Assembly: GCA_964035545.1 (NCBI GenBank)
Contig: OZ037767.1
Coordinates: 2,243,680-2,307,679 of the forward strand
Reading direction: 5' to 3'
Source of the DNA: Bugula neritina
Taxonomy: Eukaryota > Animalia > Bryozoa
Length of the DNA stretch: 64,000 nucleotides
Positions 12,101 through 15,100 of this stretch are shown here, one piece after another. A program made the position numbers and the translations under genes. The notes under the pieces are model-generated. The model made no database searches. It was not told the origin of the DNA and worked only from the letters and a program-made list of their open reading frames with translations. The first letter of the stretch is position 1. Every line of letters starts with the position of its first letter.

Positions 12101-15100
12101 TGTAGTACAGTTTTGGGCCAATATACTCATTTTAGTATTGAAATTGAAAATTCTAGTAAAATTTCAACTTGATTTTTTTAAAAATTGCAATGATTTTTGC
12201 TTATTTTTTGAACATAACTCTTTGAAATTAAAGTGGTAGCCCTGAAATGGGTCATTGGGGTTATTAGATGCATCCTAATATTTTGTTGGCAACCCTTATT
12301 GTCCATCAAGCACAGCTCGACAGCGTTTTGGCATGCCAACAACTTCTGATTTTTTAAAATATTCTTGTAGAGAACATATTTAACTTTCCATTGATATGAA
12401 TATTACTCAATATCACCTTATAAATATTGAGCAAATTATCAATTACTAATAAATGATAAGTTTATTTTAGGCGGTCCCATAATTAAGATCACCACTGTAT
12501 AATATATTGGTCCATGCTCAGAGATAGGTCATGTGGTACTACTTTGCAGTCTGTAAGTTCAACTATTCATGTAATAAACTTGTGGTATACTTATAGGCTC
12601 TATTTCAATTTAGCTCACTTCTCTAGTTATTAGCTTGCAAATTGAGGTCAGAAATATTTCCTGTAATACCAGCCCAGAAAGTTTTCAAACATCCAACAGT
12701 TTAATTTATTAAAAATATAATGGATACAGTGACTAACCTACTTCTGGTTTACAGAAATAGAAAGGGCAATGATGGAGAAAAGCTCAAAAATCTCTATGCA
12801 TATAAAAAGTTTAGAAATTACTATGCACAGTTTGAAGACACTGAAGACATCAATGTCGCCTGCATTTGCTTCTCCTTTATCTCCGCTCCAGGACAAACTG
12901 AAAAAGTTGATGGAAAGTGCAGCTGAATTAAATGCTTTCCTTACCAGTATTGAAGAGATCAAAAATGATGTAAATATATTCACATGATTTGTTATTAACT
13001 TCCAATTAAAATTTTGCAAACCTGTTAAACGGAATGTTAATAAACTACTTGTCTCTCTTTGTTTCCAGTTGGTAGAAATTAATCCAGTAGACATTGTGAG
13101 CTTCTACAAATACACAATAGTGCCTCTTAAGGTGTTTGATATTCTGAAAGCATTTCTTCTCGTACTGCAGAAGGACCATCTCACTCTTCAGGTTTGCTAA
13201 GCATAAGGTTACCTTTGATATGTCACCATCAAATAATATCTTGATCTTTACCTTAATGCTACACCTTTTGTTTGTTAATTTTCTCATCTTTTCTTGACTA
13301 GATAAGTTGCATTAACAATAAATTTTTGTTTCTTTGTACTTGCAAAATTTGTCTGTTTTCTCTAGCGATGGTGGGATGTCCGGAATGAGGTGTCTGGCTA
13401 TAGCAGAGTGACAAACCTTTTGGCTCAGGCTAAAAAGTACTCACCAGTCGTATCAAACATGTTGAACATAATAGAGGCTAGATATCTGTGTGACCCATAT
13501 CTCAGTCTTATTAATGTAGATGAAGATAGCAGTAGTGAACAAATGACTCTCGCAGTCATTCTGAAATGGGTGAGTCATAGCATGGGTCATAGGTGAGTCG
13601 TGTGAAATGAGTCATCTTAGGAGAGACGTGGCATAGTCATAGGGGTCAGTCAAATGGCATAAGTCATTGATAAGTTGCGTGACATAAATCACTACTGAGT
13701 TATTGCAGGGTTATAAAAAGTGAGTTCATCATAATGCTAATTTGTTACATGCAGAGCTGATAGAATTATTTATTTTATACAGCGCTTGCTACACTAAAAG
13801 ATATTCTGTTTCAGTTAGTTTTCTAAAATCTTTTTTGAGACAATGTGTTTCCCATTGTAGCTAACCTTTTTGGTAGAACTTCAGGAATTGTTCAGATGTT
13901 ACTATACGTTGGTGGTATTTGTAGGTTTTGCTAATGATTAACGAATCAACTGTGCATTTCAAAGATAATGGTGGAGACTTGGAGAAAGCTTTGACGGAGT
14001 TTGAGGTGTGTTTTACTCTTTTCATTAGCCCCTTTCTCTCTGTAATAAACAGCAAAACATAAAAATTACTGCAACAGTTTGACTGACCTATTCTATTGCC
14101 CAACTTTTTCCAAGATTCTTGTAATCACCACTACATTCAAGTGAAGTGAGTATTTCTATTTGAATATGCTTATAGGATAGAAGACAAGAGAAAAGTGAGA
14201 AAGATCCCATAACAGAGATTAACTCAGATACAATAGTAAATGGGAAAGTAATAAACCCCACTGAACAGGCATTAGCTAATTCCTTGTTGAATGAATGTAG
14301 CTTCATGATCGGGGCTGGATGGACATCTGCCTACATCTCTAGATGGGTTAAAGGTGAGTGTTGATGATACAAAAACAGTAAATGGTCAGAGTGATGGAGT
14401 GCACTACTGGACTACAGGTTCTAGACTTTTATTCTCTGCATGGCAGATTACCTAATCAATTATCAACTAAAATAACTTTTGTAATAGTTGTTTTGTTCAA
14501 CCCTCAGCTGAAAAAAGTCTGATGAAACTTTTGTGCATATCCCAATAACTGTTTGTGTTATCCTAGCTATATTTTACTTTGTGTGTTATGCAGTGTTGAA
14601 TTGAAAGTAATTTGACTCTTTAAAAAACTAAAAGGTTTTAGAGTATAATTTGTAGCGTAGAAAAGTTACAGGTTTGCTTGTTTATTTTTACTTTAAATAG
14701 GTTTTAAATGCATAATTTCTTTGTTAAGCTGTTTGACATTTTGATTGCTAAACTTTTGTTGTCTGACTTAGATTACAGTTTAGCAGACGCCAAACTTTAT
14801 TTAAAACATTCCTTAAGACTGAGATCTAGTATAGAAGCGTGGACTCTGTACCAGAGATATGCTCCTCAGGAAGTTCTCTTGAAGGTATGTGGCAGCTTGC
14901 AACAGCTACCTTGCATGGATGTGACCAAAGTTGTATGCAGTGCATTTACGTTACTATATTACAGCATGGAAACATCATTGCATGTATTTATGTTACTATA
15001 TTACAGCATGGAAACATCATTGAGTGTACAGGTGTTGATCGGGCTAACAACCCAGCATTTGTCTGTCAGTTCGACAAAATAGATTTCAATGGTTTAGCAA

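Follow-up and report, generated by a model that had tools for sequence, protein, structure and literature searches.

A domain resembling the dynein microtubule-binding head in the cytoplasmic tail of a bryozoan CatSper-gamma

The stretch of Bugula neritina DNA analysed here (64,000 nucleotides of contig OZ037767.1, positions 2,243,680 to 2,307,679, hereafter the window, numbered from its first letter) is AT-rich, intron-rich eukaryotic sequence from a 216-Mb assembly with a genome GC content of 34%. On its forward strand lies a gene, copy A, which on its sequence is a CatSper-gamma family member with a new tail. The order of parts in this gene is signal peptide, CatSper-gamma ectodomain, one transmembrane (TM) helix, helical repeats, a domain resembling dynein's microtubule-binding domain (MTBD), and a Sec14/GOLD-like end. 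A preliminary description had recognized, at 12900-14005, a dynein stalk-head-like domain in a membrane-channel subunit and had seen in it a possible tether from CatSper to the axoneme. The location in a channel subunit is borne out, the domain lying in the cytoplasmic tail of CatSper-gamma; the nature of the domain and the tether are weighed below.

Anatomy of the host gene

Copy A was placed as 32 exons running from 2032 to a stop codon at 17441 (approx. 1,630 codons), with GT-AG introns of compatible phases. Its main features are the following:

3218..3373 (+): CATSPERG_C exon (CatSper-gamma stem region); PF22846, 42.2 bits; phmmer to mouse CatSper gamma 2 (7EEB_F), E 6e-7
4321..4459 (+): exon of the single TM helix, with a basic juxtamembrane stretch, a phase-1 donor and no stop, by sequence; kept in copies B-D and in contig L052
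4539..11828 (+): 13 exons of cytoplasmic alpha-helical repeats (approx. 665 residues); phase continuity, exon-versus-exon profile pairs in one register, same order in contigs L039 and L052
12755..12969 (+): amphipathic-helix exon leading into the domain (helix at 12886-12969); no detectable similarity to dynein CC1
13069..13191 (+): MTBD-like H1-loop-H2 exon, 41 residues; profile comparisons, AlphaFold (AF2) helices 6-15 and 20-40
13366..13569 (+): MTBD-like H3-H6 exon, 68 residues; invariant W2, E53, S55 and W68, acidic at sites that are basic in dynein
13925..14005 (+): exit-helix exon, 27 residues; glycine helix break at the site of the dynein CC2 proline, no CC2 similarity detected
14176..15776 (+): five exons of a divergent Sec14/CRAL-TRIO-like module; RNA joints, weak matches that are correctly ordered and in register, same order in contig L038
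16595..17441 (+): final three exons, up to and including the stop codon, GOLD-like by eye; RNA joints

The identity of the gene follows from the CATSPERG_C exon, whose score compares with a PF22846 cut-off of 27.6 bits and whose closest solved relative is CatSper gamma (7EEB_F); its boundary pair, near 3215-3374, was placed by eye. The same family is matched on contig L052, and the D/E_C family had no match at the copy A locus. A hydrophobic, signal-peptide-like exon with an ATG starts all four gamma copies of the genome (by inspection; 38355-38477 in copy B), and an ectodomain of roughly 1,100 residues, with a 5' exon chain that is approximate only, separates it from the TM helix. The beta-propeller family PF15064 was matched nowhere in the genome, a blank that does not show absence. 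Besides gamma, CatSper beta and two genes of the delta/epsilon type are present in the genome; beta and one delta/epsilon gene end shortly past their TM helix. The gene shares with CATSPERG (PF22846, PF22851; 7EEB chain F) the signal peptide, the approximately 1,100-residue ectodomain with Ig-like and stem regions at its end, and the one TM helix. It differs in having a cytoplasmic tail of approximately 1,320 residues where that of CATSPERG is short (7EEB_F totals 1145 residues), and in the presence of four paralogues, every one with the tail; no plain, tail-less gamma gene was found in the genome. The helical repeats of this tail have a period near 50 residues, clearest in 5630-9361.

The MTBD-like domain itself comprises 109 residues, encoded by exons 13069-13191 and 13366-13569. 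All motifs quoted in the preliminary description are present on the plus strand, spread over these two exons and the two flanking ones (12755-12969 and 13925-14005): I.P.DI and P..V..I..AF..VL in the first domain exon, the central W, Y...P (YLCDP) and L.KW in the second, and the final V of L.KWV contributed by the exit-helix exon. Only 478 of the 1106 bases in 12900-14005 are coding; the end of this range is an exact splice donor, but the amphipathic helix begins at 12886, 14 nt before its start. The domain is internal rather than terminal, as the Sec14/GOLD-like module (approx. 420 residues) lies downstream on the same spliced transcript. This module resembles SEC14L2-type CRAL-TRIO plus GOLD proteins (PF00650) in its motif order (G.D...P, LIFD..NYP, ID...LP..YG, then a beta-rich end), and differs from them in being very divergent and fused to a channel subunit. 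Its matches are weak exon by exon (CRAL_TRIO_2, E 0.12; best tblastn, E 0.002, to a Sec14 exon of the same genome, with three exons in order and register); it is not in the PF00650 genome-search list and had no PDB match, and the last three exons (16595-17441) had no match in a Pfam search.

Splicing was followed in RNA-type contigs from three studies (their holders include a ‘symbiont metagenome’) over 6 kb, positions 11600-17500 of the window. These contigs are 88-99% alike, mix paralogues and alleles, and are uninformative on tissue. They display GT..AG joints at 11828/12755, 13191/13366, 13569/13925, 14005/14176 and onward to 17269, and one contig of 873 nt starts with the 12969/13069 joint, covers the two domain exons and reaches the Sec14-like ones. 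Before 11694, a loose contig end corresponds to the exon that stops at 10636. A joint was also observed in two forms that differ by six bases (16701/16707 to 16854), which probably reflect sequence differences between paralogues rather than alternative splicing.

From the TM helix to 10449, continuity is given by intron phases in the four copies and by L052. The relatives found come from contigs of marine metagenomes, many with the label BRYA16, which may denote a study of plastic debris (PMC5069773) with a bryozoan share of 30-90% in the eukaryotic rRNA reads. L052, from another species, contains CATSPERG_C, TM helix, repeats and the two domain exons, identically ordered and 38-80% identical in sequence, and in L038, from a further sample, the domain runs on into the Sec14-like exons. 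Within L052:7570-12393, the introns of the repeat region differ (two exons fused, two split), and those around the MTBD-like exons are identical. The TM helix and the domain almost certainly belong to one gene. It is very improbable that the domain is encoded by a cytoplasmic gene of its own, lying downstream of CatSper-gamma, and is not part of a channel subunit: the RNA test is limited to the stretch given above plus the loose end, with the TM-to-10449 joints not directly seen, but the sequence is stop-free from TM helix to domain, all GT-AG phases fit, the same exon chain recurs in four copies and in L052, and the 79 nt between the TM exon and the next one leave no room for a promoter. The protein collections searched contained no full-length or spliced relative; a search of 1.84 billion sequences gave six exon fragments only, and further searches were similar or blank.

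Likeness to the dynein microtubule-binding domain

Sequence and fold searches were run exon by exon, and since the half-domain queries measured only 41 and 68 residues, blank Pfam, PDB and fold searches weigh little. The dynein MTBD profile was built from 50 single-exon or intronless dynein pieces of the same assembly. Against this profile, the H1-H2 exon and four homologues align in one register. The best score, 12.8 bits, was obtained by the most distant homologue, L039 (equalled in 0/500 shuffles), and the window copy reached 2.2 bits (9/500 shuffles). In profile-profile comparison (hhalign), exon 13069-13191 matched dynein H1-H2 at p=3e-5 over 36 ungapped columns, none of the remaining 31 of the 32 exons doing better than p 0.05, and a register-restricted test gave z 7.7. 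For the H3-H6 exon, local hhalign against the dynein MTBD was not significant; register-restricted comparison with the H3-H6 sub-profile gave z 2.9 (p approx. 0.005, the best of 11 exons), under shuffle nulls that are lenient on helical sequence, control exons reaching up to z 3.6. The MTBD-like assignment, made by eye in the preliminary description, is thereby beyond chance for H1-H2 and weaker for H3-H6, a second-half match that may lend weak support to the likeness but does not decide it.

The matched positions are those of the dynein core: L/I4, D8, I9, F/L12, Y/F15, P19, V22, I25, L26 and A28 in H1-H2, a W and an R in H3, and P44, V51, S55, I65, K67 and W68 in H5-H6. The H3-H6 exon has a tryptophan at both ends, in columns that are W in 20/20 and 19/21 dynein rows, and its P44, V51 and S55 sit on conserved dynein columns. 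The spacing from D to W is 101 residues, versus 90 in dynein. In AlphaFold half-models, the first exon forms two helices separated by a proline loop and the second forms four, which equals the six-helix count of the MTBD. Compared with the dynein MTBD (within PF12777 MT; 3ERR, 3J1T, 6RZB), the domain shares the H1-Pro-H2 pattern, core residues, a Trp at the start of H3, V..xS ahead of the last helix with KW at its close, and a similar length and helix count. It differs in having V or S in place of the leading Pro of the PP loop, and in lying inside a membrane protein, without stalk similarity or AAA+ ring.

Database-level searches of the domain exons are blank. Pfam MT (PF12777) left them below detection, with no match above the cut-off and the loci absent from the 63 genome matches; phmmer and hmmsearch against PDB and the ESM Atlas features gave no dynein match, and Foldseek, VIA and Atlas searches with half-domain models returned neither dynein nor anything specific. 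The amphipathic helix announced before the domain does exist. The exons of the flanking helices do not resemble CC1 or CC2 of the dynein stalk (z 0.2-0.3), and the conserved stalk prolines are absent. A split dynein gene was considered and rejected, stalk and AAA exons being absent: the gene contains no motor (AAA+) or stalk exons. Judged from the encoded protein, the gene is not a dynein-family member, several defining features having been looked for and not found. In other invertebrates, a comparable MTBD-like domain occurs in stand-alone proteins; our shallow profiles detected no such protein in this genome.

Two origins can be considered for such a domain. Convergence is unlikely; under it, a helical bundle particular to the lineage would match dynein H1-H2 by chance with its first helix-Pro-helix. 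The blank Pfam MT, PDB and Foldseek/VIA searches, the insignificant second half by local hhalign, controls as high as the z 3.6 quoted above and the low score of the window copy on its own speak for such a convergence. Conversely, the ungapped H1-H2 match is unique to one of 32 exons, the adjoining exon, independently of it, fits H3-H6 best and has W at the two ends where it is expected, and the most distant orthologue, L039, is the most dynein-like, as expected under common descent. Overall, the domain probably descends from a dynein MTBD.

Paralogues, selection and genomic surroundings

Copy B is an inverted paralogue, tail to tail with copy A (window 50-17500 on the plus strand versus 18950-33390 on the minus strand), and copies C and D lie in tandem elsewhere in the genome (C3:10.53-10.59 Mb). 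Copy B is arranged as follows:

18950..38477 (-): whole gene, from signal-peptide ATG exon (38355-38477) to stop; 5' ectodomain exons roughly placed
22236..23560 (-): counterparts of the two domain exons and the two flanking ones (23346-23560, 23124-23246, 22746-22949 and 22236-22316); 96-98% amino acid identity to copy A

The domain is under purifying selection, with dN/dS of 0.07-0.23 overall and 0.01-0.05 for the H1-H2 exon; exon 12755-12969 is the least constrained (0.4-0.7). An assembly artefact or haplotype duplication was rejected on the existence of four copies, dS values of 0.1-0.6 and differing introns, and a pseudogene on open frames, dN/dS well under 1 and spliced RNA. Between copies A and B, dS declines from approximately 0.2 in mid-gene; at the 3' ends, which lie close to the centre of the inverted repeat, it is 0.06-0.12, a pattern that suggests gene conversion. 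Four gamma copies for the one beta gene found represent an unusual dosage.

Several other elements were noted in the window. Three copies of a sequence of approximately 350 bp resembling a miniature inverted-repeat transposable element, with 70-bp terminal inverted repeats, occupy different introns of A and B (10641-10996, 11006-11345 and 21369-21722). An insertion of approximately 580 bp with 164-bp inverted ends (11926-12506), to which many contigs map, is restricted to copy A. Intronic minisatellites occur at 6298-7129 (approx. 32 bp), 33890-34280 (approx. 43 bp) and 41374-41611 (approx. 27 bp). Upstream of copy B lies a multi-exon gene with tetratricopeptide (TPR) repeats (about 43800-49350, minus strand), exon-like pieces are also seen at 40677-40980 and 56315-57816, and a Ty3/gypsy-type pol open reading frame of 1642 residues (protease, reverse transcriptase, RNase H, integrase) is found at 58626-63551 on the minus strand, with 59% GC versus 34% for the genome. 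Elsewhere in the assembly, six small contigs (C125, C193, C188, C86, C255 and C154) hold intronless dynein and Sec14 genes with TAA/TAG as sense codons; they are ciliate-code contamination.

Tubulin-contact positions and a possible role of the tail

In dynein, the microtubule interface of the MTBD is formed by H1, H3 and H6 (PMC6629372). It is strongly positive, R3382 pairing with glutamates of alpha-tubulin (PMC4987762) and K3298/K3299 facing beta-tubulin (PMC4987762, PMC6629372). To locate these contact positions, we used the cytoplasmic dynein of this genome together with the PDB sequence of mouse. The equivalent of mouse R3306 in H1 is K/R in 21/21 dyneins, and Y, Y, E, A and S, never basic, in the domain sequences; that of K3299 is an invariant Pro, and that of R3382 an invariant Glu, in a register that requires one 4-residue insertion. 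Mean net charge, for dyneins versus the domain, is +0.3 versus -1.4 in H1, +1.4 versus -0.6 in H3 and +0.85 versus -2.1 in H6. This loss of contact residues argues against binding of the dynein type, and is compatible with a weak or remodelled binding.

We propose, with a probability of about one half, that the domain is a repurposed MTBD-derived fold within a channel scaffold that has lost dynein-type lattice binding. The cytoplasmic tail of CatSper-gamma would have taken up the helical head of a dynein MTBD, but neither its stalk nor its motor, and the head would have kept its core fold and presumably lost its grip on the lattice. It may then make a structural turn and bind proteins between the helical-repeat spacer and the Sec14/GOLD-like end, which could bind lipid or membrane. 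As for function, we infer that the whole tail may act as a cytoplasmic scaffold built into the subunit, for trafficking, spacing or lipid regulation of the channel; a connection with the axoneme, if any, would be indirect, via a putative basic partner protein. In mammals, separate cytosolic CatSper subunits organize arrays and trafficking, in rows beside fibrous-sheath columns (PMC9205950). EFCAB9-zeta, C2CD6/tau and TRIM69 offer a functional analogy only, as cytoplasmic mass under the channel that organizes arrays and trafficking (PMC9205950); they are separate proteins with unrelated domains, none of which was found to have an MTBD-like fold.

Several points weigh against this proposal. The likeness to dynein comes from a targeted, pairwise comparison of shallow profiles and has no counterpart at database level; the Glu-for-Arg replacement depends on an alignment with an insertion in H6; the equivalent of R3337 in H3 is still Arg in 7/8 sequences; and the assignment of the Sec14/GOLD-like end is also weak when exons are taken singly.

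The direct tether of the preliminary description, in which the domain would bind outer-doublet tubulin, the repeats span the gap between membrane and doublets, and CatSper be registered on the axoneme, fares less well. The core is MTBD-like, the strongest constraint in the gene falls on H1-H2, the tubulin-facing part in dynein, and the H3 Arg is retained, with a Lys beside the lost H1 basic site in 3/5 sequences. Besides, 665 residues of repeats could plausibly cover 13-30 nm, CatSper is flagellar in an ascidian (PMC10652287), mammalian CatSper rows run near doublets 2, 4, 7 and 9 (PMC9205950), and channel arrays could amplify a weak binding. However, the basic contacts by which dynein grips the microtubule are lost or reversed, with net acidic H1, H3 and H6 segments, the flanks lack stalk similarity, and the domain is internal, with approximately 420 residues beyond it. 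Owing to this loss of positive charges, a direct tether appears doubtful, and so does, to the same degree, the idea of a captured dynein head on a helical spacer, by which the channel itself would encode a tether of motor origin between membrane and axoneme.

Slightly less probable again would be a new, mainly hydrophobic mode of tubulin or microtubule binding, for instance a transient one during delivery of the channel to the flagellum instead of a fixed tether. The very strong conservation of H1-H2, exposed Tyr/Phe included, is consistent with such a mode, and a precedent for hydrophobic groove binding exists in the TTLL11 MT-BHB, a small helix bundle of unrelated fold that requires a second domain (PMC12366701); ‘MTBD-like’ in that study designates a different, non-dynein motif. 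Yet an acidic surface should repel tubulin tails.

CatSper-gamma and the dynein MTBD are each known; in the literature, nothing relevant was retrieved on a CatSper-gamma/MTBD combination, on bryozoan CatSper or on a stand-alone dynein MTBD, and two surveys of CatSper distribution (PMC6660944, PMC13674862) do not mention bryozoans. A dynein-MTBD-derived domain in a membrane protein would be unusual even without tubulin binding, as a natural charge-reversed MTBD; should the domain bind after all, it would provide a direct link from channel to axoneme. In this animal, one CatSper subunit brings its own cytoplasmic module of 1,300 residues, conserved in several species, with candidate positioning and lipid-sensing parts on one polypeptide.
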